DNA of 64,000 nucleotides, taken from contig OZ320319.1 of NCBI GenBank assembly GCA_976226885.1, positions 20,336,001 to 20,400,000 on the forward strand, in the 5' to 3' direction. Positions 1,636 to 61,100 of the stretch are shown here, piece by piece. The notes below the pieces were generated by a model, which saw only the letters and a list, made by a program, of their open reading frames with translations, was not told where the DNA came from and searched no databases. The translations under genes were made by a program, and so were the position numbers. The stretch's first letter is position 1. Every line of letters starts with the position of its first letter. This DNA comes from Iphione sp. A-MEVVRFRX5. Lineage: Eukaryota.

Positions 1636-1785
1636 TAAGGCCCGGTTTCCTTGTGTCCGTTTTTTTTTTCCGTATACGGGGAGGTCCGTGAAGCTCGGTC
1701 GACATAATCCCCTTCTCCGGACGTGCACGGACATGCAGTTTTCATGTACGCGGGAAATGTGTCCGTGTACGCACTCAAGCGCCAA

Positions 1786-1810
1786 GTCACGTGATGACAC
1801 TCTGACGTCA
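1786..1810 (+). promoter_or_regulatory. Putative transposase promoter elements (E-box CACGTG 1788-1793, CRE TGACGTCA 1803-1810)
   Basis: Motif matches 115-137 bp upstream of the transposase ATG in the left subterminal region; sequence match only. Confidence 0.4.
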
Positions 1811-1924
1811 CTTGACCCATTTTACAGCGTCACCTGACCTCTTTTTAAGCGCGCGTAAAGCGGGTTTGTTTACTACTCAGGTGATCGCAGACCATATCGC
1901 TGACATTCTCCAAGAAAGTCCGCG

Positions 1925-2277
1925 ATGGACGAGATCGAATTAATGGAAACACTGCTGGAGGAGTTAGAGGAAAGTGTTTTGTGTGAGGAGGAGGAAACTG
2001 CAGCTGCATTGATAGCTCTGGCTGACTCGCATGGAAAAGACAAAAAGCGGCGGCATCAGTACTGGGTGCAGCCTATCCTTCAGCGTCGTGGAGAATTAGG
2101 TGCATTCCACACACTTGTGCAAGAGTTCCTCGAACTAAACGAAGGTTTTAAGGGCTACTTTCGACTGACAGTTCCTCAGTTTGAATATGTAGTTCGGAAA
2201 CTAACCCCTTCATTGGAGAGGGTGTCGCTGACACGTGAGGCTATTCCACCAAAGGAAAGAGTCGCCATTTTTTTAAG
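1925..2277 (+). CDS. Harbinger transposase exon 1 of 2; CDS join(1925..2277,3522..4461), 430 aa
   Basis: MDEIE...RRHQYWVQPILQRR...FKGYFRLTVPQF...AIPPKERVAIFLR is a typical Harbinger N-terminus. Donor AG|gtacat at 2278, phase 2, joins exon 2 in frame (R-YVAAGES). Confidence 0.93.
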
Positions 2278-2654
2278 GTACATATAATTACACTTTATTA
2301 CGTTCATAATGTCACATATAAGTAGTAGTGTGTAAAATATCAGTCGTAATAATTTTATTGAGAAGAAATCGCACAATATAATCTACCCCGTTAATAAATC
2401 GTAACTTGTACATATAGTGGACATTGTCATTCATATGTAAATGTACAATTCTGAGTCGTCGACATTTAGTAGTAGTACCTAATTTTGGTCCGCGATATAA
2501 AAGGACATTGTAAACGGAGAGTACAGCCATAGTAAACATTGCTGTTAAATGGTATATCACCGTTGTTCTAAATGTACATATCTGAGTCTCGGACAGTTGT
2601 TAGTAGTACAGAATTTGGTCCGCGATATAAATGTCCATGGAAAATGCCATAATT

Positions 2655-3309
2655 TCACATGGCATGGTACTGCTTCCCAATCTCGCTACATTGGTTATAT
2701 AAGTCTCTGTCGCCGAAGAGCTCTGGTGACGCTGGGCACTCTGAGTAGGAGTAGGTGCTAAGAGCAGATGAGTGACTCTCTTGAGCGACTTGACGTAGGC
2801 GTGCTGGCGTTGGTGGCGTCTGCTCGTAGTACTGACTGGGGACAGGTGCTCGTCCTGGTGGCGTTGATTGGTGGTCCTGCAATTGCTGCGAGTAATTATA
2901 GTTACCGTGAGTCTGTCTTGCTGGCAGCGAGTGTTGCACCTCGTAGAACACCTCAGAAATTTTTATTTGTAGTCTGGCCTGCTGCTCGGGCGAGAGTGCT
3001 CGAAATCTGGGAACAAATGATGCCCAAAACATCCAGGCATTGTCCCTCATCCAGTCCTTCTCTTCTCTGTCCTGTCGAGACAGATCTAGTTGTCTTTGTA
3101 GCAGCTCAATACGTTGCATGCTCTCCTCTCTCCTTTTCTCTGATGATTTCGCTAATTTCTGCATAACAGAGGCTATGTCGTCATCGTCATTCTTCCTTTT
3201 CTTCCCCTTCTTCGTCGACTCAGTTGACGTTGGTTCAGAGGCTGCTGCAGAAGTGGCAAAAGTCTCTGGCTTCTTTATTGGCTTAGGGGTCGAGGTGACA
3301 AGCGGAGGC
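2655..3309 (-). CDS. MADF-BESS protein exon 3 (basic KKGKKRK patch, BESS-like motif)
   Basis: Acceptor ttttacag|G keeps the frame. DNAWMFWASFVPRFRALSPEQQARLQIKISEVFYEV resembles a BESS motif. Stop at 2655-2657; minus-strand AATAAA at about 2354-2359. Confidence 0.88.
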
Positions 3310-3521
3310 CTGTAAAATGAAGTAGTTGAAGTCAGTCACATATAAATGAATGTACTGCATTATGTAAATGAATTGACTGCATTAATGAAAACCATTGTCA
3401 TCGTGGACATTAATATGTCCGCGACCTAGTCATATCTGACCATTTTCATCGCGGACATTTATATGTCTGCGACCTAATCAGAGTTGATGTGAAATTAAAA
3501 TATGCACTCATATATTTTCAG

Positions 3522-4461
3522 ATATGTTGCCGCTGGTGAGTCACAAAAAAGCTTGGGGTACCAGTATAGGATTGGACGCGCCACCGTTCATCGCATAATT
3601 GAAGAAGTTGCTGACGCTGTTAATGAGCACCTCTTCGCTGAAATGGTCACCCCAACAACACCTGAAGAGTGGGAGCTAGTGGCAGCCAACTTCCAGGAGG
3701 AGTGGCATTTTCCCAACTGTGTCGGTGCTATTGATGGCAAGCATATCAACATGTTTGCAGCAGTCAACAGTGGGTCCGTATTCTACAACTACAAGGGCCA
3801 CTTCTCCATTGTCCTCATGGCAGTGGTCGATGCCAATTACAATTTCCTGTATGTTGATGTTGGACGTGAGGGCAAGAACAGTGATGGCGGTATCTTTCAG
3901 AGGATGGACTTTGGTAGGGCCCTTCTCGACGGCGCACTGAATTTGCCATCTGCTAGGGTCCTGCCTGGAGCAGAACATTTAGGACACCTACCCTATGTGT
4001 TTGTGGGGGATGAGGCTTTCCCCCTACTGCCCAACCTTCTCAGACCATACCCAGGACGTGACCTCAATGACCGACATCGAATGTTCAACATGCGGCTATC
4101 TAGGGCTCGTCGGATGGTGGAGTCTACGTTTGGTATTTTGGCCGTCCGATGGAGAATCTTCCATACAAAGATTCTACTCCGTCCAACCACCCTCGCCAAG
4201 GTCGTCAAAGCCTGTTGCATTTTGCATAATCTCATCCAGAGCAGCAGCACCCCTGCAAAGATCAAGGTAGTAGCTGAGGCTGCTCGGGATGATGGTGAGG
4301 CCGCTGCCCTTGCCCCCCTTCCCAGAACAGCACACCGAATGCGCCAGGACGGTGTAAACGTCCGACACAAATACATGCAATACTTTGTTGACCATAACCC
4401 TCTCCACTGGCAAGAGGAATATGTGCAGCGGGGTACAGAGCCTACCACGTCACAGACCTGA
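3522..4461 (+). CDS. Harbinger transposase exon 2 (DDE_Tnp_4/HARBI1-like catalytic domain)
   Basis: Acceptor ttttcag|A at 3521/3522. Motifs FPNCVGAIDGKH, YNYKGHFSIVLMAVVDA, NSDGGIF, VFVGDEAFPL, SRARRMVESTFGILAVRWRI, ACCILHN; no stops or frameshifts. Confidence 0.97.
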
Positions 4462-4488
4462 ACTGATCCAGTGACAAGCTGTACTCAC

Positions 4489-4879
4489 CCAATGTCGATC
4501 CTGGCCCCATCAACCTCAACACCTGCTGGTTCGTCTTGCGACACATCAGTAACTTGTGAATCTGCCTGTGACTCTGCCTGAGAGTCACACTGCGTCTGCT
4601 GTTCTTGGTCGCATTCCTGTGATTGACTCCCTGGAGCCTCCGAATCCACTTGGACATCATCTGGCACCTCAGACGTCTCTTGCACTGGCGCCTCGTAGAC
4701 GAAGTTGGACACATAGGCCTGTTGATCATTGCAGAATTTGTCCAGAAAACCGAGGATATCATAGTATGGCCATTTACGTGTGGTTTTAGGTGCCTGGCCA
4801 CTCTTTGTTAGCCTGGCCTCCCGCCTCTTCTTGACATACTCGTCCCGCAATGTGCGCCACCTGGTCTTGCATTGCTCTA
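4489..4879 (-). CDS. MADF-BESS protein exon 2
   Basis: Acceptor ctgcag|TA. (L)EQCKTRWRTLRDEYVKK...KSGQAPKTTRKWPYYDILGFL completes the MADF domain. Donor GG|gtgagt at 4488, phase 2. Confidence 0.93.
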
Positions 4880-5195
4880 CTGCAGATGAATGTAAAATGT
4901 GAGAATTAAATGTCAGACCAATCTTCAATGCATTTGCTAATAATCACTGACCATTTTTATCATGGACTGATGTATTGATGTGTACCATTTTATTATTCGC
5001 TGACCATTGTATTATCTGAGACCTTTATCATTCCCTGCATATTATCGTTTGTATTAATCGCGGACCATTTATTTATCGCGGACCAATTATTTATCGCGGA
5101 CCATTTCTTACTTTTGTCGTGGACCGTAATGTTACTATTTCTAAATTAAAGTCCGGTAAATTAAAAACCAAAGAGAACATCAGTTCAAGGAATCT

Positions 5196-5762
5196 TTATT
5201 TCGAAAATTTCTGATCCGGGTAGATGGGCAGGTCCTCCTTGCCAGAGACAATGGCAGTCTGCAGACAGCGGATCAGGTAAGCCTTGAAGGAACCTGACCC
5301 CTTCTTGTAATTCCCCTCCAGAGTCTTGATTTCTTCCGGCGTGAGGGGCGTCCTGTCAACATCGTCCGGTTTAGTGGTCTCTGCAGTTGAACTGCCTCCA
5401 CCAGCTGCTCCTTTACTGGTGGCCATCTGGAGTGAGAGCCGCTCGAGATCACGGGCCAGGTGGTCAACCTGCTTGCCGATCTCATCACAGCGGCCACGCA
5501 TGTTCCTGTCCAGAAGTGCTGCGTCATCCCTCCTGTCCAACACCTCCATCTCAATGAGTTCCCGGAAGTGGGGGATCTCATGGAGGCTGCGGTTCACCCG
5601 CTGCATGTCCTCCCGCAATGACAGGATCTGGGACTGCTGCTCGCTGACGATGGCCTGTGTCACCAGGATCTGGTCGGTAACATGGCGCACCTGTTCCTGG
5701 AGGCTCCAGCTCTGTGTGTCAGGGGCCTGCGGCTGCTCTACCATTTGATGATGCTCCCCTAT
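5196..5762 (-). CDS. Third gene exon 5 (coiled-coil-like region and helical C-terminus)
   Basis: Acceptor cttctag|ATA; 188 open codons (LQEQVRHVTDQ...LARDLERLSLQM...GSFKAYLIRCLQTAI). An AATAAA overlaps the stop codon. Confidence 0.83.
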   Translation of the reverse strand: MGEHHQMVEQPQAPDTQSWSLQEQVRHVTDQILVTQAIVSEQQSQILSLREDMQRVNRSLHEIPHFRELIEMEVLDRRDDAALLDRNMRGRCDEIGKQVDHLARDLERLSLQMATSKGAAGGGSSTAETTKPDDVDRTPLTPEEIKTLEGNYKKGSGSFKAYLIRCLQTAIVSGKEDLPIYPDQKFSK

Positions 5763-5974
5763 CTAGAAGTAGAAAAAAACCAAACAGAATGGTCCACGAT
5801 TTAATGGTGTACATATGTATGTGAATATGTTTTTAATTTCAATAAATTGTATCTGAATGAAGGAAATATTGTTTTAGTATCGCTGACCAACAGTATTGTC
5901 CGCTATATCACTGACATTATGAAGGTTTCATTCAGTTAAGTTTCAATGAAATTGTGCGCTACATATGTAGTTAC

Positions 5975-6223
5975 CTCATGGGCCTCCGGCTGCTTGGGTT
6001 GGGCGTCTTGTGTGGCCTGCGGGCGCTTGGGTCGGGCATCTTGTGTGGCCTCCTGGCGCTTGGGTCGGGCGTCTTGTGTATCCTCCTGGCGCTTGGGTCG
6101 GGCGTCTTGTGTATCCTCCTGGCGCTTGGGTCGGGCGTCTTGTGTATCCTCCTGGCGCTTGGGTCGGGCGTCTTGTGTGTCAGGGGCCTGCGGCTGCTCT
6201 TCCATCTGATGATGCTCCCCTAT
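5975..6223 (-). CDS. Third gene exon 4 (6 more repeat units)
   Basis: Acceptor cttctag|ATA; IGEHHQMEEQPQAPDTQDARPKRQE...AHE; donor GAG|gtaact; 249 nt = 83 codons. Confidence 0.8.
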
Positions 6224-6455
6224 CTAGAAGTAGATGAAAACCAAACAGAATGGTCCAAGATTTAATGGTGTACATATGTATGTGAATATGTTTTTTATTT
6301 CAATAAAGTTCCATCTCAATCATCAATGTTGTATGTTGAATTATATCTGCATGAATGAAATATTGTTTTAGTATCGCTGACCAACAGTATTGTCCGCTAT
6401 ATCACTGACATTATTATTAAGTTGCAACGAAATTGTGCGTTACATATGTATTTAC

Positions 6456-7043
6456 CTCATGGGCCTCCTGGCGCTTGGGTCGGGCGTCTTGTTTAGCCTC
6501 CTGGCGCTTGGGTCGGGCGTCGGGTGTAGCCTCCTGGCGCTTGGGTCGGGCGTCGGGTGTAGCTTCCTGGCGCTTGGGTCGGGCGTCGGGTGTAGCCTCC
6601 TGGCGCTTGGGTCGGGCGTCGGGTGTAGCCTCCTGGCGCTTGGGTCGGGCGTCGGGTGTAGCCTCCTGGCGCTTGGGTCGGGCGTCGGGTGTAGCCTCCT
6701 GGCGCTTGGGTCGGGCGTCTTGTTTAGTCTCCTGGCACTTGGGTCGGGCGTCTTGTTTAGTCTCCTGGCGCTTGGGTCGGGCGTCTTGTTTACCCTCCTG
6801 GCGCTTGGGTCGGGCGTCTTGTTTACCCTCCTGGCGCTTGGGTCGGGCGTCTTGTTTACCCTCCTGGCGCTTGGGTCGGGCGTCAGGGGTGGCCTTGGGG
6901 GCTTTGGATTTGCCTTTAGGGGGAGCTGGCTGCTCCTCCTCCTCCTCCTCTTCCTCCGAATCATCCTCATCCTCGTCCTCCTCAGTGGTCTGGTCATCAG
7001 ATTCGCTCTCCTCCGTGCTGGATACGAAGATGGCCGCTACTGC
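6456..7043 (-). CDS. Third gene exon 3 (acidic tract plus 13 x 11-aa DARPKRQExxx repeats)
   Basis: Acceptor ataacag|GCA; AVAAIFVSSTEESESDDQTTEEDEDEDDSEEEEEEE...; donor GAG|gtaaat; 588 nt = 196 codons. Confidence 0.82.
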
Positions 7044-7224
7044 CTGTTATAATGGAACAGACACATGTAATTCTTATAGGCACAATCACATCAACGGAGA
7101 TATGAATTGAACTAGCAAAATCAATCACGGACTTTTCTTCCTTGTACACTATCAACTCAAATGAGACATGCATTAAACTAGCAAATCGTGGACTTTTATT
7201 CCTGAAATGTCAGCGACTAGATAC

Positions 7225-7358
7225 CTCAGCACACCACAGCGCCTCCTGGCGTTTTTCGAACTTTGCCAGGTCTTTCTCGTATTGCGCCCATCTCCGGTCG
7301 AACTCCTCCGGTGACAGGTTGGAGCGGCGCTGAGGCTTGGGGGGGCGCTTGTTTTCAA
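7225..7358 (-). CDS. Third gene exon 2
   Basis: Acceptor ttacttccag|TT; (V)ENKRPPKPQRRSNLSPEEFDRRWAQYEKDLAKFEKRQEALWCAE; donor GAG|gtatct; 134 nt, phase 1 in and phase 0 out. Confidence 0.78.
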
Positions 7359-7383
7359 CTGGAAGTAATTAACATCCATACTT

Positions 7384-7556
7384 TGACATTATTCATATAC
7401 AAAATACATGCATGTCGTGGACAGTCTCAGCATACTCCAACAAATAGTCAGCGACACATAATACTAACATTATTTGACATTATTCATATACAAAATACAT
7501 GCATGTCGTGGACAGTCTCAGCATACTCCAACAAATAGTCAGCGACACATAATACT
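7384..7556. repeat. Two-copy tandem repeat (about 91 bp) in third-gene intron 1
   Basis: tgacattattcatatacaaaatacatgcatgtcgtggacagtctcagcatactccaacaaatagtcagcgacacataatact, twice. Confidence 0.9.
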
Positions 7557-8289
7557 ATGCAAAGGGTGAATACGGCAGTGTCTAGTATAATCTATTCATT
7601 GCACGGGATGTGTGCTGCATTAGCCGCTACACTCTCCCCGGGCCTGCCTGCCATCAGCAGCAGCAGCAGCACCAGCCGCCGAGCATGTCTGCTCGACCTG
7701 AGTGTACCCCCCACAGTGCTGCCACTGTATTGTCTTGTGTGCTGCCGCTGGCTGCTTCCCGCTGACTGCCTCCCGCACCCCGGCTGTGTGCTCCCCATCG
7801 GCAGCGGCGGCGGCGGCGGCGGCGGCAGCAGCAGCATGCATGCAAGCATGCAAGCGCTGCGCCTGTGTGCCAGAGGATCGAGTGTAGCCCTTCTATGATG
7901 GCAGCGCACCGCCCGCGACATGCAACAGCGGCCGCCTGTGTGCTCGATCATGCAGTGTACCCCCTCCCCATCTCTGCCTCCCTCGACCCTCCCGCAGCAG
8001 CAGCGCCTACGGGCTCCACACATTTGATACCCAAGGCAGAATAATTTTAAGGAAAGTAATTTTTGTCGCTGACATTTTCAATGGAAACATGACTTAATTA
8101 AAAAACAGCCAGTCAAACTTTAACACACTTGAGAACTGTCCGCGAGACATGACATGCAAAATTTGAAAAACCTGAGAATTGCCCGCGATATAAGGTCCAA
8201 GATTATCCTTCTACAATGTCCGCGATTTTAATATCATTCCATGAAACAAATGCAAGCAGATACATGAAATAGGGAAAATGTTTACTCAC

Positions 8290-8545
8290 CACGAGCCAGA
8301 CGCTTTCTGCTCGCCCTCTTCAGAGCATTCACATGTGCTTTGAACTCGGCCGCCTTCTGAGGTGTTGAGGTTTTCCTCCTCCTGTATCGGCGACACACGG
8401 CTGCATGTGAAGTTGGGTCATAGTCAGATCCATGCTCTGATCCATTATCAGACTCAGCCACGTATGTTTTCTCTGCTGCTGCTTTCTTCTTCTTCTTCTT
8501 CTTGTGAGCCTTCGTGCGGCTACGATGCTTCTTTGGTGGGGGCAT
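8290..8545 (-). CDS. Unknown transposon-borne third gene, exon 1 of 5; CDS complement(join(5196..5762,5975..6223,6456..7043,7225..7358,8290..8545)), 597 aa
   Basis: MPPPKKHRSRTKAHKKKKKKK (NLS-like)...SDYDP...KRASRKRLAR. Donor G|gtgagt at 8289, phase 1. Start codon is inferred. Confidence 0.75.
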
Positions 8546-9000
8546 CCTGACGAATGATCAACGACCAAGTGTCGCCCTCCCCTGCTGCTCTGCTATTGTG
8601 ACCATCACCCCCCCTCCCCCTGCAGCAGCAGCATCACTCATGTCGCATTGCGGATATTGCAGCAGAGCAGGGCCCTACATGCTTCATTTGCATTCATGAA
8701 TATTCGACACATTGCGGAAGATTCTAATGCTCACAAACCCAACCCCTGGTGTTCAAATTAGAGAGATGTTACCCTTCAGACATAGACATGCTGGTATTTC
8801 ATATACTACAACGGGACCTACAAATATATGGTTTGTGTGATATTAGGAATGCAAAATTAAACATGCAAGGTGTATTATACTCTCACGTTGAGAGGGGATA
8901 TTATGTAGCCTGTAATCATACTCTTGCCCGCACTAGGACAGGGCTTCTCTTGAGCGCGACCTGTCAATCAAAAATGTGGGGAGGGTTCTCGCAGGACCTG

Positions 9001-9265
9001 TCGCTCATATCGCGTCAGTTGGGGTGAGGGGTTCGCATTCATCTCACTGTGTGCATGGAGGGCTTCATGTCGCTCACTGGGTCGCGGACAATGCCATACT
9101 CATGGACGTTTAAAACATACATGTAAAAATACACCTAACGCAACGTTTACAATCGCTCATATCGTGTCAATTGGGGTGAGGGGTTCTCATTCATCTCACT
9201 GTGTGCAAGGAGGGCTTCATGTCGTCCACCCTAGGCGCAGACAATGCAATACTCTTGGACATTTA
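9001..9265. repeat. Two-copy direct repeat, period about 152 bp
   Basis: tcgctcatatcg.gtca.ttggggtgaggggttc.cattcatctcactgtgtgca.ggagggcttcatgtcg at 9001 and about 9153. Confidence 0.88.
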
Positions 9266-9339
9266 TAACACATCCAAAGAAATGCAGAAACATTCTCTGA
9301 TAAACACAAATTTGTTTGGACATAAACAAGAAATAGAAA

Positions 9340-9720
9340 AAGTCAGCGAGGTTAACCAGTGATATAATGGTCCACGACATTGGTCAGTGATTAGAATGGT
9401 CCCCGACATTGCAATGAAACATATATTGGCATGGACATAAGCAAGAAAAATAAAAGGTCAGCGAGGTTCACCAGTTATTAGAATGGTCCCCGACATTGCA
9501 ATGAAACATATATTGGCATGGACATAAGCAAGAAAAATAAAAGGTCAGCGAGGTTCACCAGTGATTAGAATGGTCCACGACATTGGTCAGTGATTAGAAT
9601 GAAACATATATTGGCATGGACATAAACAAGAAAAATAAAAGGTCAGCGAGGTTCACCAGTGAGATAATGGTCCACGACATTGGTCAGTGACTGGAATGAA
9701 ACATATTGGCATGGACAGAA
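9340..9720. repeat. Degenerate tandem array (about 85-100 bp unit, about 4 copies) in MADF intron 1
   Basis: Repeated catggacataa..aagaaaaataaaaggtcagcgaggttcaccagt...ggtccacgacatt; units carry GTCAGCGA and GTCCACGA (or the variant GTCCCCGA) motifs. Confidence 0.9.
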
Positions 9721-9746
9721 ACAGAAGCATATTAAAGTGCACTTAC

Positions 9747-9912
9747 GTGATACACTTGGGGCGGTTTCTTTCATAGCCTGCCAAATGGCCTTCCAGCTGT
9801 TGGCTGCCTTGATCTGGTCCTTGTAGTCTTTCCTGTACATGTCGTAGAGGTTCTGGTGTTGCCGCACTAGCTCAATGAGCTGTTCGCTTCGCTGAACAGT
9901 GAAGATCTTCAT
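9747..9912 (-). CDS. MADF-BESS (Myb/SANT-like) protein exon 1 of 3; CDS complement(join(2655..3309,4489..4879,9747..9912)), 403 aa
   Basis: MKIF...EQLIELVRQHQNLYDMYRKDYKDQIKAANSWKAIWQAM is the first half of a MADF domain. Donor C|gtaagt at 9746, phase 1. Confidence 0.92.
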
Positions 9913-9980
9913 GTCGAATTTTCGTTCCTTCCCGCGTCTGCTTGAGCTTCTCGAATATGGTCCGAGAGGCTCGCATGCAC

Positions 9981-10064
9981 CTTTTTTATACTACTACTAC
10001 CCACGTGGATTCGCGCGACCACGTGTTTGTGTATGACGGTCAGCGACCACATGACCCTCACGTG
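9981..10064 (-). promoter_or_regulatory. Putative MADF gene promoter (TATAAAAA at 9990-9983, three CACGTG E-boxes)
   Basis: TATA about 70 nt upstream of the ATG at 9912; CACGTG at 10002, 10020 and 10059. Confidence 0.5.
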
Positions 10065-13000
10065 ACCGAGAATGTCCGCGACACGCCCCTCTTACGTAAT
10101 TTTCCGGAGCCCGGAGTCCGTGCTGCGGAGAAATTTACGAGCAGTGACCGTTTTCGGTCTCCGGACCCCGGACCACGCACCACGCACTACCACGCACCCG
10201 GACACATGGAAACACTCCAGTGCATTAGCATAGTCCCGTTTTTTTCCGCACCACGGAGTCCGTGGTGCGGAAAAAAAAAACGGACACAAGGAAACCGGGC
10301 CTAAGAGTGCTTTCAATATATGCAGGGTGTCTAGGTTACTGTAACAAAATGTTGCACCAATATTTTCCATTTGCTGAGAGGCTCCAGATCTCCCCCACAA
10401 TCCGGTACAAAATGCAGAAGGGACCAATAAGCGTGCATACTCCTTCCCAACACAATGCAGACCTCGAAACGCATGATTTCTTTTATCCATAATGGTGTGA
10501 GCCCTGCTTCTAGGAATTGAGAGCCTTTTTTAACAACTGTGATTTCATTAGGTGAGTGCATCACTTAATCCAGTTAACGTGATAAGCAGTTCTGTAGATT
10601 GTCACGCCCTCCAGCACATAGAATTATTCAGCCTCAAGCAAAGTGCACCAACCCACCGTAAACATATGATTTGTCTATATACATGTTGATACTTTACCAA
10701 CACACTAAAACTAACATAAAAGAATTGACAATTTTGATTTTTGCTTTACCTTCACAAATTAGGCAGATGAACTCGCTTGTAAAACGTACGATTTTTTATT
10801 ATTAATCTTGTACATGTACTTAATATTAAAATGTAATGTTCTCCCATAAAAGTTTTGTTACTGTAGATTTGTAGTATAACACTGAAACTTGCAACAAGAA
10901 TGACAGAAGACTAGCGATGAAAAAATAATGTTACAGCAAAGCCTCATAGTAGAAAAGGAAATTAAGAGTTCCAACCTGTCCCTGTCACCAACAAGCCCTA
11001 CTCTACCCTACATGTGGTTCTCAACGTGAATTCAGGATTCTGTTCCTGAAATTCAAACACAAAAAGGCACCCGAAGGTGAATTTGAACTTACGTAAACAC
11101 TACAAGGTCTAGAGTAGTCTTTCATCATATAGAAACATAAATACTTTTTGGTTCTATCAAAATTGGTCTCTCCCATATCTTGTCTCCTCTGGGATCTGGT
11201 CTTTAATGAGAGTAGACTACATGTGTATTGCAAATTTTATCTGCTTTAAGTTTTTGTCTTTATGAGAATCATTCATTTCCTCCCGTAGAAGCCTTGGACA
11301 CAATTAAGCATTCATAAAGAACAAACAATTGATATCCATATGTTTATTTACACTGACAGTAATGTAGGCAGCCACCAGTTCTTCCTTGTCTCTGTTCATA
11401 TGATAAACCTGTATAAATACCTTTCACATCCAGGTCCCTACATGTTGGTTCACCAGTCACACGTTTTCGTAAACATCGGCTAGACAGTTCACGTTCGACA
11501 CGAATGAAAACTAACCTTAACAACATGAAACTCTGTAATCATTTTCTTTTTAGAATAAGTTTGTAATATCCAAACAGACAGCTCTCTCTCAGTTTGAGAG
11601 GGGAAATTATAAGGTCATCTTGAACCAGAGAGATGCATTCCGCCAAAGGAACACCTTCAACCCCTTTCAACTCAAAAACTAAGCGGGGGGGGGGCTTGTC
11701 ATGGATCCTTGAAATAGACTATTTTGGATAGCACGAAGAAGATGAAACGTGCAGCATCCATTGATTTTGTAACACTTTCTGCATCACCACAGGTGTATTG
11801 TGAACAGGACACTATGTTGAGAAGTTTACTTTCACGATACAAAAAGAAGACATAAAGATGGAAGACGGGCCACTGCAAAACGCATTGTCGGTTATACCCC
11901 ACACTTCTAATATAATAGGCAATGAGTATTGACTGGAGCTGGGTCTCAAATATGTAGGTAATACAAAGTTTCAGATAATTTTAGTTAGTTTGGTTAGTCG
12001 GTGAATAATGGTGATGGCATATGTTTGCTCGCAATTTACACCATATAACTGAAAACCGTTTTCGATATATAGGCCTACATATATATACAAACTGATAATG
12101 TTTACAGATAAACTAAATTCGTTATTGACATATATAGCATAAATCTGCAAGTTACTCTTATAATTATGTAGAAATGTGTTTTGTAGCTCCACTGATCAAG
12201 AGATGATAGGAATTAAAGTTTCATTTTGTATAACAGGATCTGACGAGAAATTGAGTCGTGTTGCATATCCAACCCAATAGGTGGCAGCACTGTGGCGGAT
12301 CCACAGAGAAGTAGGGATCTCTGCAATTTTTGCGTGATTTGAACTGAACCTGTCTTCAGACTTTTTTCAAAAGATTTTTATAAAGCATTGTCATCGCCAC
12401 ATGCAGAAAAGCAAGTAGTACTTATATCGTGGAAAACTTTGGCAGGGGCATACAATTGCAGCATTAAAGGTCATGGATTTTAGTTTGATACTGATTCAAA
12501 TATTATTTATTATTATAGCAGTAGATATCTTTGCCCTCTCCCTTTTAAGTAATTCTTAGACGAGAGGGTTGGGGGTGTTGTGTCGTCAGCACTGCATAGT
12601 ATGAAAATATCACACATGGATGGTTTATGTGCTGCTCGGATCTGTGGGCTGCATACCACCATGCAAAAAGTAAAGGAGACCAAGTAAAGCTGCAAAACTA
12701 CATTTTCCAGACTTGATTGGGACTTTTCTTAGACTGATGGTTACTCCTACCTTGTATATTTTTACACTAACTATATACAATATTGTCCAAAGGTAGTCCC
12801 AACCAAACCTCATGGCAGAAGTTCATTTATATTTGCCGAGAAAAATACCACTAAATGTGTGTAGGGAAGCAGAGCAGCTGTCCCTACCCCAGTTTTCAAC
12901 ACAGGTGGGAGAGAGGGAGGGGCGTAGAGAGAATGCCTAAGGCGCTCGTTTATGCACTTTTTTAAAAAGGCATTATCAAGCCCCTGTTAACATGATGCAT

Positions 13001-13270: not shown

Positions 13271-14329
13271 TTAGTCGTCGTCGGAGATGGTTTGCGTGGC
13301 GGAATTGACGTTGATCAGCGGTCGATAGCTATCTCGGACATCGTAACAACAGCACACGCGACTAGTGGCGCCACGGACGTCGGGTAGGAGAGTCACGGCG
13401 AGGATGAGAAGCAGCATCTCGACACCCGAGTAGAGCCAGTGGGTGACGACCCAGGGGCCCAGGCGGGAGATCTGAACGGCGTCGTCGATGACCACCAAGA
13501 GCATGGCGATGTCCACGACGACCACCAAGACGACGCTACCGCTGTGAACGACGGGGACGTCCAGGTCGGTCACGTTCGCGTTCCCCTGCCTTCCCCCACC
13601 GCGGCGGCTTTTCTTACAGAAGGCCACCACCAGGGCGGCGCTGGACACCGCCAGGGCCATGGCGGGCAGGATGTTGGCCACCAGCTGGTTCAGGAGCACC
13701 TGTAGGTGGCGCGCGCTGCGGTTGGTGACCACGTAGCAACCCACACTGGCGTGGTGACTGTCGCTGGAGCTGAGGGCTCCGCGCACCTTGTCACTGGCGA
13801 TGTCCTCGTTCATGGCGAAGTTGCGAATGATGCCGAAGAAGAGCCCCACCGCCCAGGGAATGATGATGACGGCGAGACGACTGGGGGTCTTGATGATTCT
13901 GGCATAGAGAAGCGGCCACTTGAGGGCCACCAGGCGCTCCACCGTCGCTGCCAGCAGCGTGTAGGGCAGAAGGATGGACTCCACGTCCAGCAGGACCAGG
14001 TAGAGGCTGCAGTAGGCCGGGGTGAGCCTGGCGCCACGCACCTCCTCGTGGATGGTCCCCGGACGGACGAGCAGGCTGAAGAGGACGGTGGCGGCCGCCA
14101 GACTGGCGAGCAACTGGTGGAAGAGCTGGTGCTGCAGGTGGCGGTGGGCACAGAGGAGAACAAGCACGCAGACGGCCAGTAGAGTCACACAGCCCACGAT
14201 CAGAGACTCCGTGACGACGAAACTGACAGTCAGGAGGCTGTACGGGTCCGGTGGTGTTGTTGGTGTTGACAATGCCACACTCAGTGGTGTGCTGTTCAGT
14301 GGTGGGGACATGATGTTGTTGGCGGCCAT
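13271..14329 (-). CDS. Intronless divergent rhodopsin-like (class A) 7TM GPCR, 352 aa, orphan
   Basis: Single ORF with high GC3 and about seven hydrophobic segments. N-terminal NST sequon, Cys at the top of TM3 (AYC) and in ECL2 (GCY), DRY-position motif TVERLVALKWPLLY. Confidence 0.88.
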   Translation of the reverse strand: MAANNIMSPPLNSTPLSVALSTPTTPPDPYSLLTVSFVVTESLIVGCVTLLAVCVLVLLCAHRHLQHQLFHQLLASLAAATVLFSLLVRPGTIHEEVRGARLTPAYCSLYLVLLDVESILLPYTLLAATVERLVALKWPLLYARIIKTPSRLAVIIIPWAVGLFFGIIRNFAMNEDIASDKVRGALSSSDSHHASVGCYVVTNRSARHLQVLLNQLVANILPAMALAVSSAALVVAFCKKSRRGGGRQGNANVTDLDVPVVHSGSVVLVVVVDIAMLLVVIDDAVQISRLGPWVVTHWLYSGVEMLLLILAVTLLPDVRGATSRVCCCYDVRDSYRPLINVNSATQTISDDD

Positions 14330-57487: not shown

Positions 57488-58108
57488 GGCCCGGTTTTCT
57501 TGTGTACGGATTTTTTTCTGTACTGCGTGATGGTGCAGAAAATCGGATGCTTTTCTGGACCTGCACGGACNNNNNNNNNNNNNNNNNNNNNNNNNNNNNN
57601 NNNNNNNNNNNNNNNNNNNNNNNNNNNNNNNNNNNNNNNNNNNNNNNNNNNNNNNNNNNNNNNNNNNNNNNNNNNNNNNNNNNNNNNNNNNNNNNNNNNN
57701 NNNNNNNNNNNNNNTGGAGGTCGAAGCATATCTGTGGAAATTGTGCATTTTTTTGTGAGGACGAAGCATATTGGTGGAAATTGTGCAGCTTTTTGTGGAG
57801 GCCTAAACATATTTGTGGAAATTGTGCAGTTTTTATGCAATTGATATGCAAATTCAAAAATATATCACAACATCTTATATATGATACATAGTTTTTCTGT
57901 TTCTTAAAATGCCTCAAACCTCCTTTTATATACTTCTAGTGTATCCATGCTCCGGAATCCAGGAAAAAAATTAACATTGCCTGTTTTCGGACCACGGACC
58001 ATGCACACAGATGCATGGGAACACTCCAGTACATTGTCAGTCCCATTATTTTCTGTACCACATAGTCCATGGTCCAGGGAGAAAATCCGTACACAAGGAA
58101 ACCGGGCC
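57488..58108. mobile_element. Non-autonomous Harbinger related to the 1639-10301 element (spans an N gap)
   Basis: Ends GGCCCGGTTT(T/C)CTTGTGTACGG; both subterminal regions align by eye with those of the autonomous element. Flanks differ (TAA versus TTA). Confidence 0.8.
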
Positions 58109-61100
58109 TTATACATGAGGTAATACCTACATATCTATTCTAGGTGTTCCTCTTTCTGATTTAAACTATATTAAACAAAACCAACCTGGCATAGCAGTAT
58201 CCACATCATATTTTTTGAAAATGGCTTATTTCATACAGTAGTTTGGCAAGAACCACAAGATCATAAGGTAAGATCGGAGGGCTAGAAGGTTGGACAGCAG
58301 TATTCCTTGAGCCTGCACCCCCTTCCTCTTGGAGGTGGGAGAAAAACAACCAACAGAAGCTAACAAAGAGCAACAGGGAGGTCCATCACCTGGCACGAAG
58401 TTGACTGGTGGGGAGACAAGGAAGTGAGAGATACTTGGCATGGAGAGAAACAACACTTGGCATGGAGAGAACCAAGAGGACCAAACGAAAAGGCAATGAA
58501 AAAAATTTAAATAAATCACTTGATCACTTTACCGGAGAATCTACACGGTAGAACATCACCTGCCAGACAGACCAGGAATCAAAACAGCAGTGCAGAATAA
58601 GATTTACAATGTATAGTTTTCCCTCTGCAAGGGCTAAGTCTTTCATATCAAAGCCTCTGACACTAAAAGGTATACCGAAGTTAATGTTATGGATGATTTT
58701 AACTTGATTCATTTGAGTTCTTTAAAGTCAGTTCAGAATACATGTGTGGTACCCATAGATGGTGCATGAGTTCAGTCCAGCAAAGACATATTCCTAGAAA
58801 TCTGTCAGGCAGATATGAAAAGGCATACTCGATTTAAGTTTGAGTATTCTTCTGAGCGCACAAGTGCGACGTTTCCTTAGAGACATACATAGCGGCATGC
58901 ATCTGTAACACCATGCCTCAGACTAAGAAACCCACATTTGCTAATGCACAGCCCTGTTCGCTTATCTAGGTATGTAGCTTCGACCGCTTGTGTCTACGTT
59001 CGCCACGTCTACATCGCCATGTTGAAAGTGGCAATGCTTTTGGATGGCAGACATGATCGTCAAGTACACAGCTTGCAGGAAACACCCACACATGTACGCA
59101 GAGCATTTGGCACAACACATACATACACTGCATACGAACCAACTCCGCCTTACAACGGCAGGGAGGACAAGGTTCACACAGGTGCCATCCCAGTGGCAGC
59201 CACCCATACGATGAAGTACGGATGATGGTGTGGTCAATGTGATGAGTTGGGAGTACACATATGAATGGGGTCTAGAGAGAGGATAGTGGTTATGTAATGA
59301 GATTTATAAGAGAGGGATAACAGATGGACAAGTTGGGTGGGGGAGGGGATTATAACTTAACTTCACTGGACGCTTGACCACGTATCCCAATGTCTCACCT
59401 GACCCCTGAACTGACCCTGATCTCAACTACATCCCCCCTCCCCCGTAACCATGCACTCCAACACACATACGCTCGCCCACACTTTGACCCAAATAAACAT
59501 CCATCCAATAACTCTACTCCCTCACGTCCATACCCACACCAGAACGCACGCACGCTAAAGCACATATACACACACATACACACACGTACCAGGTGAGAAT
59601 CACAAATCAAGGCGACTTAGATCACCCTGTCTTCACTTATAAATACACGTAGTAGATGGTCACAACACTCGACACAATGACCACCTATAATACGTTATTC
59701 TAGACTGGGCGTCAGGACATCTACTTGATTTTTTTTATATATAAGCGAAGGATATTGTGGGTCGATAAAACCCGGTCTGATTTCCTTAAACTCCCAGTAT
59801 TCACTTCATCAAATACACCACCCACCACTCCTACCTCTACGACAACCAATATTGTGCGTCGATAAAACCCGATGTAATTCCCCTAAACTCCCAGTATTCA
59901 CTTCATGAGATACACTACTCCTACCTCCAAGAGAATCAACACACTCCTTCGCTACCGCCCCCCCCCCTAACCCCCGCCAGCCGACATAACAACTACATGT
60001 ATTACCCCCACCGTTGCGACTTCGTACAAGATTCATTGACCAATAAAGAGAAATGACAGTGAAATAAACCCGTTCGCCCATTTTTTCCCTGGACGTCCCG
60101 TGGCGCCTAAACATGCAGCGGGTATTGGTTGTAGTTATTGGCGTCGTTATCATTATATTGCGCCACAGTGGATAAGTACGGGGCAATTCTCCTCCACAAC
60201 AATTGGGTGTGGGTTTTTTTTTCACTCCTTCCCTACGGCTAAGCTCGCTGTCCCTCCCTGCTGGGGACATGATACGGTATTGAGCAGCTCGTAAGAATTA
60301 TCTTTTTTTTAAAGCGGAGGGGTGGGGGTTGGGGGAGGGGGAGGAAGGTACACATGTGTTAGGCATGGCAGGCCTTCCGCGCGGGTTGGGGGGCGGGGGG
60401 CGGGCAGGCTGGGTTGAGTAGTGTATTGGGGACATGGACGGGCCGGGGTGGGGGTATTGGGTGGAACTAAGGTAGATAGCTGGCACGCTGCCAGAACGGA
60501 TCAATAGCTCAAGCCTGGGTGGCGGTACCTGGCGGCCACTCGGGGAGGTATAACTCGCCTCCGCTGACTGCTCGGAGCGGCTCGGTCGCGGTTGGTTCCG
60601 CACCATTGATCACGGCTAGAGGTGGTCCGCCGCTGCCGCCACCGCCCGGCCGTACGCCATGGTGAGGTGGACGGGCGGGGGGGGGGGGGCGGGGTAGAAG
60701 GCTTACGTCGGCGTGAAAGATACCCTCCTCTTACACTTCGCCGGATTCATCCGCTATTTTTAGCGACGTCACTGATTGTAAATTTATAATATATACATGC
60801 ACAGGTGTGTGTGAGTGTGTGTTTGTGTCTGTGTCTGCGCCTGTGTGCGCGCACGTGCGCGTGCCAGGCAAAAGGACAAAACAATCGTGCTGAATGTACA
60901 TGTAATGCACTTCACAGCTTAATACCTTAATATCATACAAATACATGTACAGGTATCTGCTTTCCAAAAAAAATCATTAATGCTGAATACCTTTAACTCG
61001 ACAGAGCCTGCGTTGGGCCAGGTAGTTAGACAGCAGTGATCTAGGGTCCCTGACGGTCCACCACTCTTCTTGGGGTGGGGGGACAATATGGACTGTTTAG

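Follow-up and report, generated by a model that had tools for sequence, protein, structure and literature searches.

A PIF/Harbinger transposon in a 64-kb stretch of the genome of Iphione sp. A-MEVVRFRX5 (contig OZ320319.1, positions 20,336,001 to 20,400,000 of the forward strand; hereafter the window) contains, in addition to a transposase gene and a MADF gene, a third open reading frame (ORF), which we refer to as ORF3 and which lies entirely within intron 1 of the MADF gene on the MADF strand. Canonical PIF/Harbingers encode two proteins, a transposase and a Myb/SANT-like protein, and extra genes are exceptional. We consider it very probable that ORF3 is a real gene, counting as such also a gene that is only a passenger of the transposon. 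With a probability of roughly 0.55, we favour the narrower reading that ORF3 is a genuine protein-coding gene that forms an integrated, lineage-restricted part of the autonomous PIF/Harbinger element, and not an ORF open by chance or a second transposon nested within the first.

ORF3 consists of five minus-strand exons between positions 8545 and 5196 of the window, which together comprise 256+134+588+249+567 = 1794 nucleotides (nt) and encode 597 amino acids (aa). These exons and the associated polyadenylation signal are as follows:

8290 to 8545, minus strand: ORF3 exon 1, Lys-rich N terminus; 256 nt, ending in phase 1, with A at position -3 of the ATG, donor GTGAGT and a GC content of 52% versus 35% in the flanking intron.
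7225 to 7358, minus strand: ORF3 exon 2, helical SPEEFDRRWAQYEKDL segment; 134 nt, acceptor TTCCAG, donor GTATCT, GC content 60%.
6456 to 7043, minus strand: ORF3 exon 3, acidic tract and 13 units of a 33-bp/11-aa DARPKRQExxx repeat; 588 nt, with the repeat part open in three frames.
5975 to 6223, minus strand: ORF3 exon 4, a chimera that arose by tandem duplication within ORF3 and holds 6 repeat units; 249 nt.
5196 to 5762, minus strand: ORF3 exon 5, coiled-coil domain, short helical tail and stop; 567 nt, 188 open codons.
5195 to 5200, minus strand: AATAAA polyadenylation signal, overlapping the ORF3 stop.

All four introns begin with GT and end with AG, their phases are compatible, the frame ends at a single terminal TAA, and the splice sites are similar to those of the element's homology-supported introns. 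The 19 DARPKRQExxx units are divided between exon 3 (13 units) and exon 4 (6 units). Moreover, exon 4 begins with a copy of the start of exon 5 and closes with a copy of the end of exon 3, the duplicates being spaced 461-494 bp apart. As exon 4 derives from an internal tandem duplication of ~460-490 bp, the ancestral ORF3 had four exons. In total, ORF3 has an uninterrupted frame, canonical splice sites, a start, a stop and a poly(A) signal, a combination that is weak evidence on its own according to the chance model described below. The original prediction, made by reading the DNA without database searches, had described the same five exons, phases and protein length, and we reproduced the coordinates exactly; its statements that ORF3 has its own AATAAA and lies on the same strand in a 4.87-kb MADF intron 1 between perfect terminal inverted repeats (TIRs) also hold (5200-5195 for the signal, 4867 bp for the intron, 34/34 matches for the TIRs).

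Base composition, motif distribution, codon usage and the survival of the frame support that the proposed exons are exons. The GC content of the ORF3 exons is 52-65% versus 30-36% in the introns, with steps at the predicted splice sites, and the same contrast is present in the homology-supported genes of the element (transposase and MADF exons 47-52%, introns 33-34%). At every exon boundary of ORF3, the GC content changes sharply and a maximal open segment ends.

The element has 36 copies of the 8-mer GTC[CA][GA]CGA, distributed over both strands, versus three copies in the other 55 kb of the window, and 34 of the 36 are in non-coding DNA, including every intron of the element. Within the span of ORF3, there are 12 copies in 1556 intronic bp versus one copy in 1794 exonic bp (Fisher p=0.001), bearing out the earlier remark that the ORF3 introns carry the motif of the whole element. 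In being AT-rich and dense in the motif, the ORF3 introns match the remainder of the element, which speaks against a host gene having recently been captured together with its host introns. The motif has the core GTCCGCGA and an extended form of approximately AATGGTCCGCGATA, and its copies span positions 1897-10081; this putative site is probably bound by a protein, perhaps the MADF protein.

Codon usage was assessed with a composition-controlled score for which the transposase, the MADF gene and one host G protein-coupled receptor (GPCR) were the only training sequences; 110 segments that are stop-free by chance and span at least 80 codons served as the comparison (mean -0.277, standard deviation (SD) 0.172, maximum +0.031). 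Exon 5 (+0.169) and the non-repeat part of exon 3 (+0.095) score above the maximum of the chance segments, and exon 2 (-0.006) and exon 1 (-0.057) score near zero and below that maximum; all four non-repeat pieces fall within about the top 5% of chance ORFs or exceed it. Across 5196-8545, each proposed frame scores higher than the other stop-free frames overlapping it, and in exon 5 the GC content is lower at the second codon position than at the first and third. Finally, over some 200 intronic bp, the copies of the internal duplication differ by ~6% substitutions and two indels, and the non-repeat frame of 1167 nt is unbroken; simulations without constraint, which assume that the duplication arose within the lineage, gave a probability of 0.003-0.06 that this frame would be intact.

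The protein features that had been read from the translation, i.e. the SPEEFDRRWAQYEKDL helical segment, the E/D tract and the 19 repeats, are all present, and AlphaFold2 (AF2) together with the heptad pattern supports the proposed coiled coil. In the AF2 model of exon 5, helices cover residues 21-61, 63-116, 142-154 and 159-173, the first two forming a hairpin with a pLDDT of 85-96 that is followed by a disordered linker and two short helices, and 18 of the 30 LIVM residues occupy a/d positions of the heptad register. The part encoded by exon 1 is basic (net charge +20) and mostly disordered, with 43 disordered aa preceding two helices of low confidence in the AF2 model. More than half of the ORF3 protein is low-complexity or disordered.

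In Pfam, none of the five exons reaches a family cut-off; the best match, MbeD_MobD (21.0 bits, cut-off 21.6 bits), was taken as a coiled-coil artefact. Similarly, there is no significant profile match in ORF3 to known chromatin, chaperone or DNA-binding families (HMG, BEN, NAP, bZIP, THAP etc.) by Pfam or by PDB sequence and fold. We also considered paralogy with the element's own proteins; the only match, of 14 residues containing C[SD]EIGKQ (E=0.013), was treated as chance. On these data and models, the ORF3 product is an orphan protein that is highly charged and predicted to be largely disordered, with an N terminus resembling a nuclear localisation signal (NLS), and that probably self-associates.

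The element that carries ORF3 comprises the following features:

1636 to 1638, no strand: left target-site duplication TAA; an identical TAA lies at 10302-10304 outside the TIRs.
1639 to 10301: Harbinger element, 8663 bp, bounded by 34-bp TIRs and the TAA duplication.
1639 to 1672, plus strand: left TIR, starting with GGCCCGGTTTCC; 34/34 positions complementary to 10268-10301.
1925 to 2277, plus strand: transposase exon 1; its in-frame join to 3522-4461 gives an intact protein of 430 aa.
2655 to 3309, minus strand: MADF gene exon 3, within the transposase intron; completes an ORF of 403 aa, with a weak BESS match (E=0.06).
3522 to 4461, plus strand: transposase exon 2 (DDE_Tnp_4); Pfam PF13359, E=4.8e-30, full profile 1-158.
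4489 to 4879, minus strand: MADF gene exon 2; MADF_DNA_bdg positions 43-84, E=2.5e-07, with a frame that fits exons 1 and 3.
9747 to 9912, minus strand: MADF gene exon 1; 166 nt, Pfam MADF_DNA_bdg positions 1-41, E=1.5e-07.
10268 to 10301, minus strand: right TIR; 34/34 match to the left TIR.
10302 to 10304, no strand: right target-site duplication TAA, the same as at 1636-1638.

The transposase also matches PF04827 (E=6.8e-10) in Pfam and has 3059 homologs in protein collections, many of which are labelled HARBI1/ALP1-like; the closest match there is a partial hit at 65%. The MADF domain is divided between exons 1 and 2 of the intact 403-aa ORF, and the intron separating them extends from 4880 to 9746. 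With its DDE_Tnp_4 transposase, MADF DNA-binding partner gene, TIRs and 3-bp TWA duplication, the carrier is a PIF/Harbinger element that is complete and evidently young. Its transposase and MADF genes lie interleaved on opposite strands (1925-4879), such that transposase exon 2 lies inside MADF intron 2 and MADF exon 3 inside the transposase intron. No second copy of the element was detected in the window or, by protein or TIR pattern, in the metagenomes of the Joint Genome Institute (JGI). A related Harbinger-type terminus at 57998-58112 is 77% identical to the right subterminal region and ends in ...ACAAGGAAACCGGGCC followed by TTA, with masked runs of N close by. An Rfam search of the window gave no match.

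ORF3 intron 1 contains a block of 481 bp (7560-8040) with a GC content of 63%, low complexity, CAG/GCC runs and a loose period of ~168 bp, which is free of the motif and flanked by inverted copies of it. As a candidate for a missed exon this block was rejected, the codon score being negative in all frames and the translation being of low complexity. Tandem repeats are present upstream of ORF3 (9385-9682; 3.3 copies of 87 bp) and in ORF3 intron 1 (7382-7557; 1.9 copies of 91 bp, 98-100% identical), and each unit includes the element motif.

Several results weigh against ORF3 being an integrated gene of the transposon. We used dynamic programming to determine the longest chain from ATG to stop with at most four GT-AG introns. 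In 42 control stretches, each of 3.55 kb and taken from elsewhere in the window, the chains averaged 1139 nt (SD 223, maximum 1713 nt); the ORF3 region gave 2094 nt, or 1665 nt with the repeats collapsed, and its antisense strand 1734 nt. Because control chains reach such lengths, splice-compatible phasing alone is ~2.4 SD above background, and compatible GT-AG phasing is weak evidence for ORF3 on its own; the phases in the original prediction were correct and the weight placed on them was overstated. Approximately 35% of ORF3 is the 33-bp minisatellite, which is stop-free in three frames and has a poor codon score, and since these arrays are open in all three frames, 627 nt of ORF3 are uninformative. 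The argument from the age of the duplication fails if the duplication reflects template switching between already-diverged copies. ORF3 is seen in one copy, and as the element is young, its TIRs being perfect and none of its genes broken, an intact ORF3 proves little. In addition, expression of the MADF gene should suffer competition from a poly(A) signal that lies on its own strand within intron 1.

The database searches add to these points. An exhaustive phmmer search with exon 5 against 1.84 billion representative proteins returned two weak matches of the coiled-coil type and no homolog; a PDB sequence search was negative, as was the ESM Atlas for exons 5 and 1, and Foldseek with the exon 5 model detected no fold match among the clusters of the AlphaFold Database (AFDB) or in the PDB. 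The structural check suggested with the original prediction has thus provided, for exon 5, a confident helical hairpin and no matching fold, and its statement that no domain is recognisable in ORF3 stands after the Pfam, PDB, ESM Atlas and AFDB searches. We also compared three related Harbinger loci, L001 (Haliotis), L003 and L004 (ENA assembly ERZ22147071), with transposases that are 45-51% identical by tblastn. ORF3 is present at none of the three, which means that it did not belong to the clade's ancestral gene set. L004 likewise has the interleaved layout, with the BESS exon upstream of transposase exon 2, and its MADF intron 1 of ~5.8 kb (L004:11330-17120; ERZ22147071 ctg31534l) contains on the MADF strand a non-LTR (long terminal repeat) retrotransposon ORF of 789 aa with endonuclease and reverse transcriptase (RT). 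These comparisons suggest that MADF intron 1 is evidently a permissive site and ORF3 a late, family-specific acquisition.

The same observations bear on the alternative that ORF3 is a passenger, transcribed or not, without a role in transposition, i.e. a host gene or gene fragment captured by transduplication, or an ORF that arose de novo from GC-rich, repeat-rich intron DNA, and that it is intact because the copy is young. An orphan without homologs or domains, more than half of it low-complexity or disordered, that is missing from related Harbingers would be expected of such a passenger; the MADF intron of a relative tolerates foreign DNA, i.e. the long interspersed nuclear element (LINE) in L004, and transduplication is documented in the animal Harbinger Turmoil-1 (PMC2572040). 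However, the ORF3 introns are motif-laden, AT-rich DNA like the element's other introns and unlike host introns, the frame has outlasted an internal duplication whose copies are now ~6% diverged, and the codon usage of exon 5 is gene-like. We regard a passenger as unlikely, albeit as an explanation to be taken seriously. The window also includes an intronless rhodopsin-family GPCR ORF (13274-14329, minus strand, 352 aa; 7tm_1 E=6.4e-12). The sole database relative of this host gene is 56% identical and lies on an 8.3-Mb contig (ENA assembly ERZ25767047), from which it follows that the host lineage is poorly sampled.

Alternatively, the model could be spurious or partly wrong, such that only some of the GC-rich blocks, e.g. 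exon 5, are or once were coding and the five-exon chain is an artefact of picking GT and AG around open stretches and a frame-neutral minisatellite. The lengths of the spliced ORFs obtained from the control stretches and from the antisense strand fit this explanation, as do the poor scores of repeat arrays that are open in all frames, the scores of exons 1 and 2 that are only near zero, and the non-coding 481-bp block in intron 1, which means that high GC alone is no mark of an exon. However, picking of this kind would have to account for exon boundaries that match both sharp GC steps and the ends of maximal open segments, for the scores of all four non-repeat pieces, which about 5% of the chance ORFs at most attain, for a depletion of the motif that tracks the proposed exons, and for splice-site contexts that agree with those of the homology-supported introns. 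Altogether, we consider a wrong model improbable.

ORF3 might also represent alternative exons of the MADF transcription unit, in which case one primary transcript would yield a MADF or an ORF3 isoform by alternative splicing and polyadenylation, as for TnpA and TnpD of En/Spm. ORF3 is on the same strand and entirely inside MADF intron 1, and the internal AATAAA would supply an alternative 3' end. Moreover, MADF exon 1 (end at 9747) and ORF3 exon 1 (end at 8290) both end in phase 1, so that either could be spliced in frame to exon 2 of the other gene. However, this agreement in phase is expected by chance one time in three, and the fusions would split the MADF domain that spans exons 1 and 2. 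ORF3 also has its own ATG in a good context, and joining MADF exon 1 to a candidate CAG acceptor one base upstream of this ATG would shift ORF3 exon 1 into the +1 frame, where a stop follows after just 71 open codons (frame 1, 8544-8332). We consider this arrangement very unlikely.

A repeat search of 4880-9746 detected no TIRs, LTRs, long direct terminal repeats or target duplication belonging to ORF3, only copies of the motif and internal tandem repeats, and the only inverted pairs in MADF intron 1 are copies of the element's own motif; the separate nested transposon that the original prediction had named as a possible refutation was not found. That ORF3 belongs to another transposable element that inserted into the MADF intron is scarcely credible, for while insertions into Harbinger MADF introns occur, as the LINE in L004 documents, no terminal repeats or target duplication bracket ORF3, Pfam detects no transposase, RT or integrase domain in it, its splicing is not retroelement-like and its introns share the motif of the carrier.

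If ORF3 is an integrated gene of the element, its transcription would start inside MADF intron 1 and follow the MADF strand; the four GT-AG introns would be removed from the transcript, and its poly(A) tail would be added ~300 bp short of MADF exon 2. The predicted product of 597 aa would have a Lys/Arg-rich, NLS-like N terminus, an acidic tract, 19 charged 11-residue repeats that are variable and encoded by a minisatellite, a helical-hairpin coiled coil of ~95 residues and a small two-helix tail. Such a protein would most likely act as a nuclear, self-associating scaffold or adaptor on or together with the element's own nucleoprotein complex or chromatin, and its gene would have been gained after the carrier family split from its nearest sampled relatives. 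The reading frame, its exon-like composition and codon usage and its embedding in the motif pattern of the element are observed directly, and from them we infer the expression of ORF3, the nuclear location and self-association of its product and any benefit to the transposon.

The original prediction went further and proposed a dedicated accessory nuclear factor, possibly an anti-silencing or histone-chaperone-like protein. Nothing in ORF3 beyond the Lys-rich N terminus, the acidic tract and the coiled coil points in this direction, and an anti-silencing or chaperone role is speculation. A broader idea is that, in this invertebrate lineage, a Harbinger clade with interleaved genes may use its large MADF intron 1 as a cargo bay for family-specific accessory genes, with ORF3 as a fast-evolving nuclear coiled-coil helper, e.g. 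in anti-silencing or in organising the motif-studded DNA, and as a functional analogue of VANC and MURB; we put this forward tentatively and think it rather doubtful.

PIF/Harbingers are textbook two-gene transposons, and our literature searches found no report of a Harbinger with three genes. Canonical elements, e.g. Harbinger3_DR and Ping/Pong (PMC2836001, PMC13668399), have a DDE_Tnp_4 transposase, a Myb/SANT/MADF partner, short TIRs and a 3-bp TWA duplication. The present element is like these in its transposase, DNA-binding partner, TIRs and TWA duplication, all of which are intact, and unlike them in having a third, multi-exon ORF in MADF intron 1, mutually interleaved genes, and non-coding DNA saturated with one 8-mer. 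Turmoil-1 of C. elegans is a PIF/Harbinger with transduplicated host fragments (the RNA recognition motif (RRM) of rsp-2, and cpg-3) in its inverted terminal repeats (PMC2572040). Both are animal Harbingers with coding sequence beyond the two canonical genes; however, unlike the Turmoil-1 fragments, ORF3 is complete, with five exons and a start, stop and poly(A) signal of its own, has no detectable parent and is intronic. Even if ORF3 is only a passenger, it nicely illustrates how an orphan spliced ORF can arise in, or travel with, a mobile element.

Outside the PIF/Harbinger superfamily, the VANDAL (Mutator) elements of Arabidopsis carry VANC anti-silencing proteins, and MuDR of maize carries MURB. 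ORF3 would be similar to VANC and MURB in concept only, as a fast-evolving, family-specific extra protein beside a transposase; these belong to another superfamily, the exhaustive search with exon 5 returned no homolog, and the analogy is no more than a lead. If ORF3 is a maintained third gene, then animal cut-and-paste elements, like VANDAL and MuDR of plants, can evolve private accessory factors, and the 8.7-kb element would offer a tractable three-gene system for asking what such factors do. In En/Spm (CACTA), TnpA and TnpD are produced by alternative splicing of one transcript, and a repeated motif is subterminal. The present element resembles En/Spm in that several proteins are encoded on one strand and in that a short motif, probably a protein-binding site, is repeated in the non-coding DNA; unlike in En/Spm, ORF3 begins with a start codon of its own and all introns are filled with the motif.

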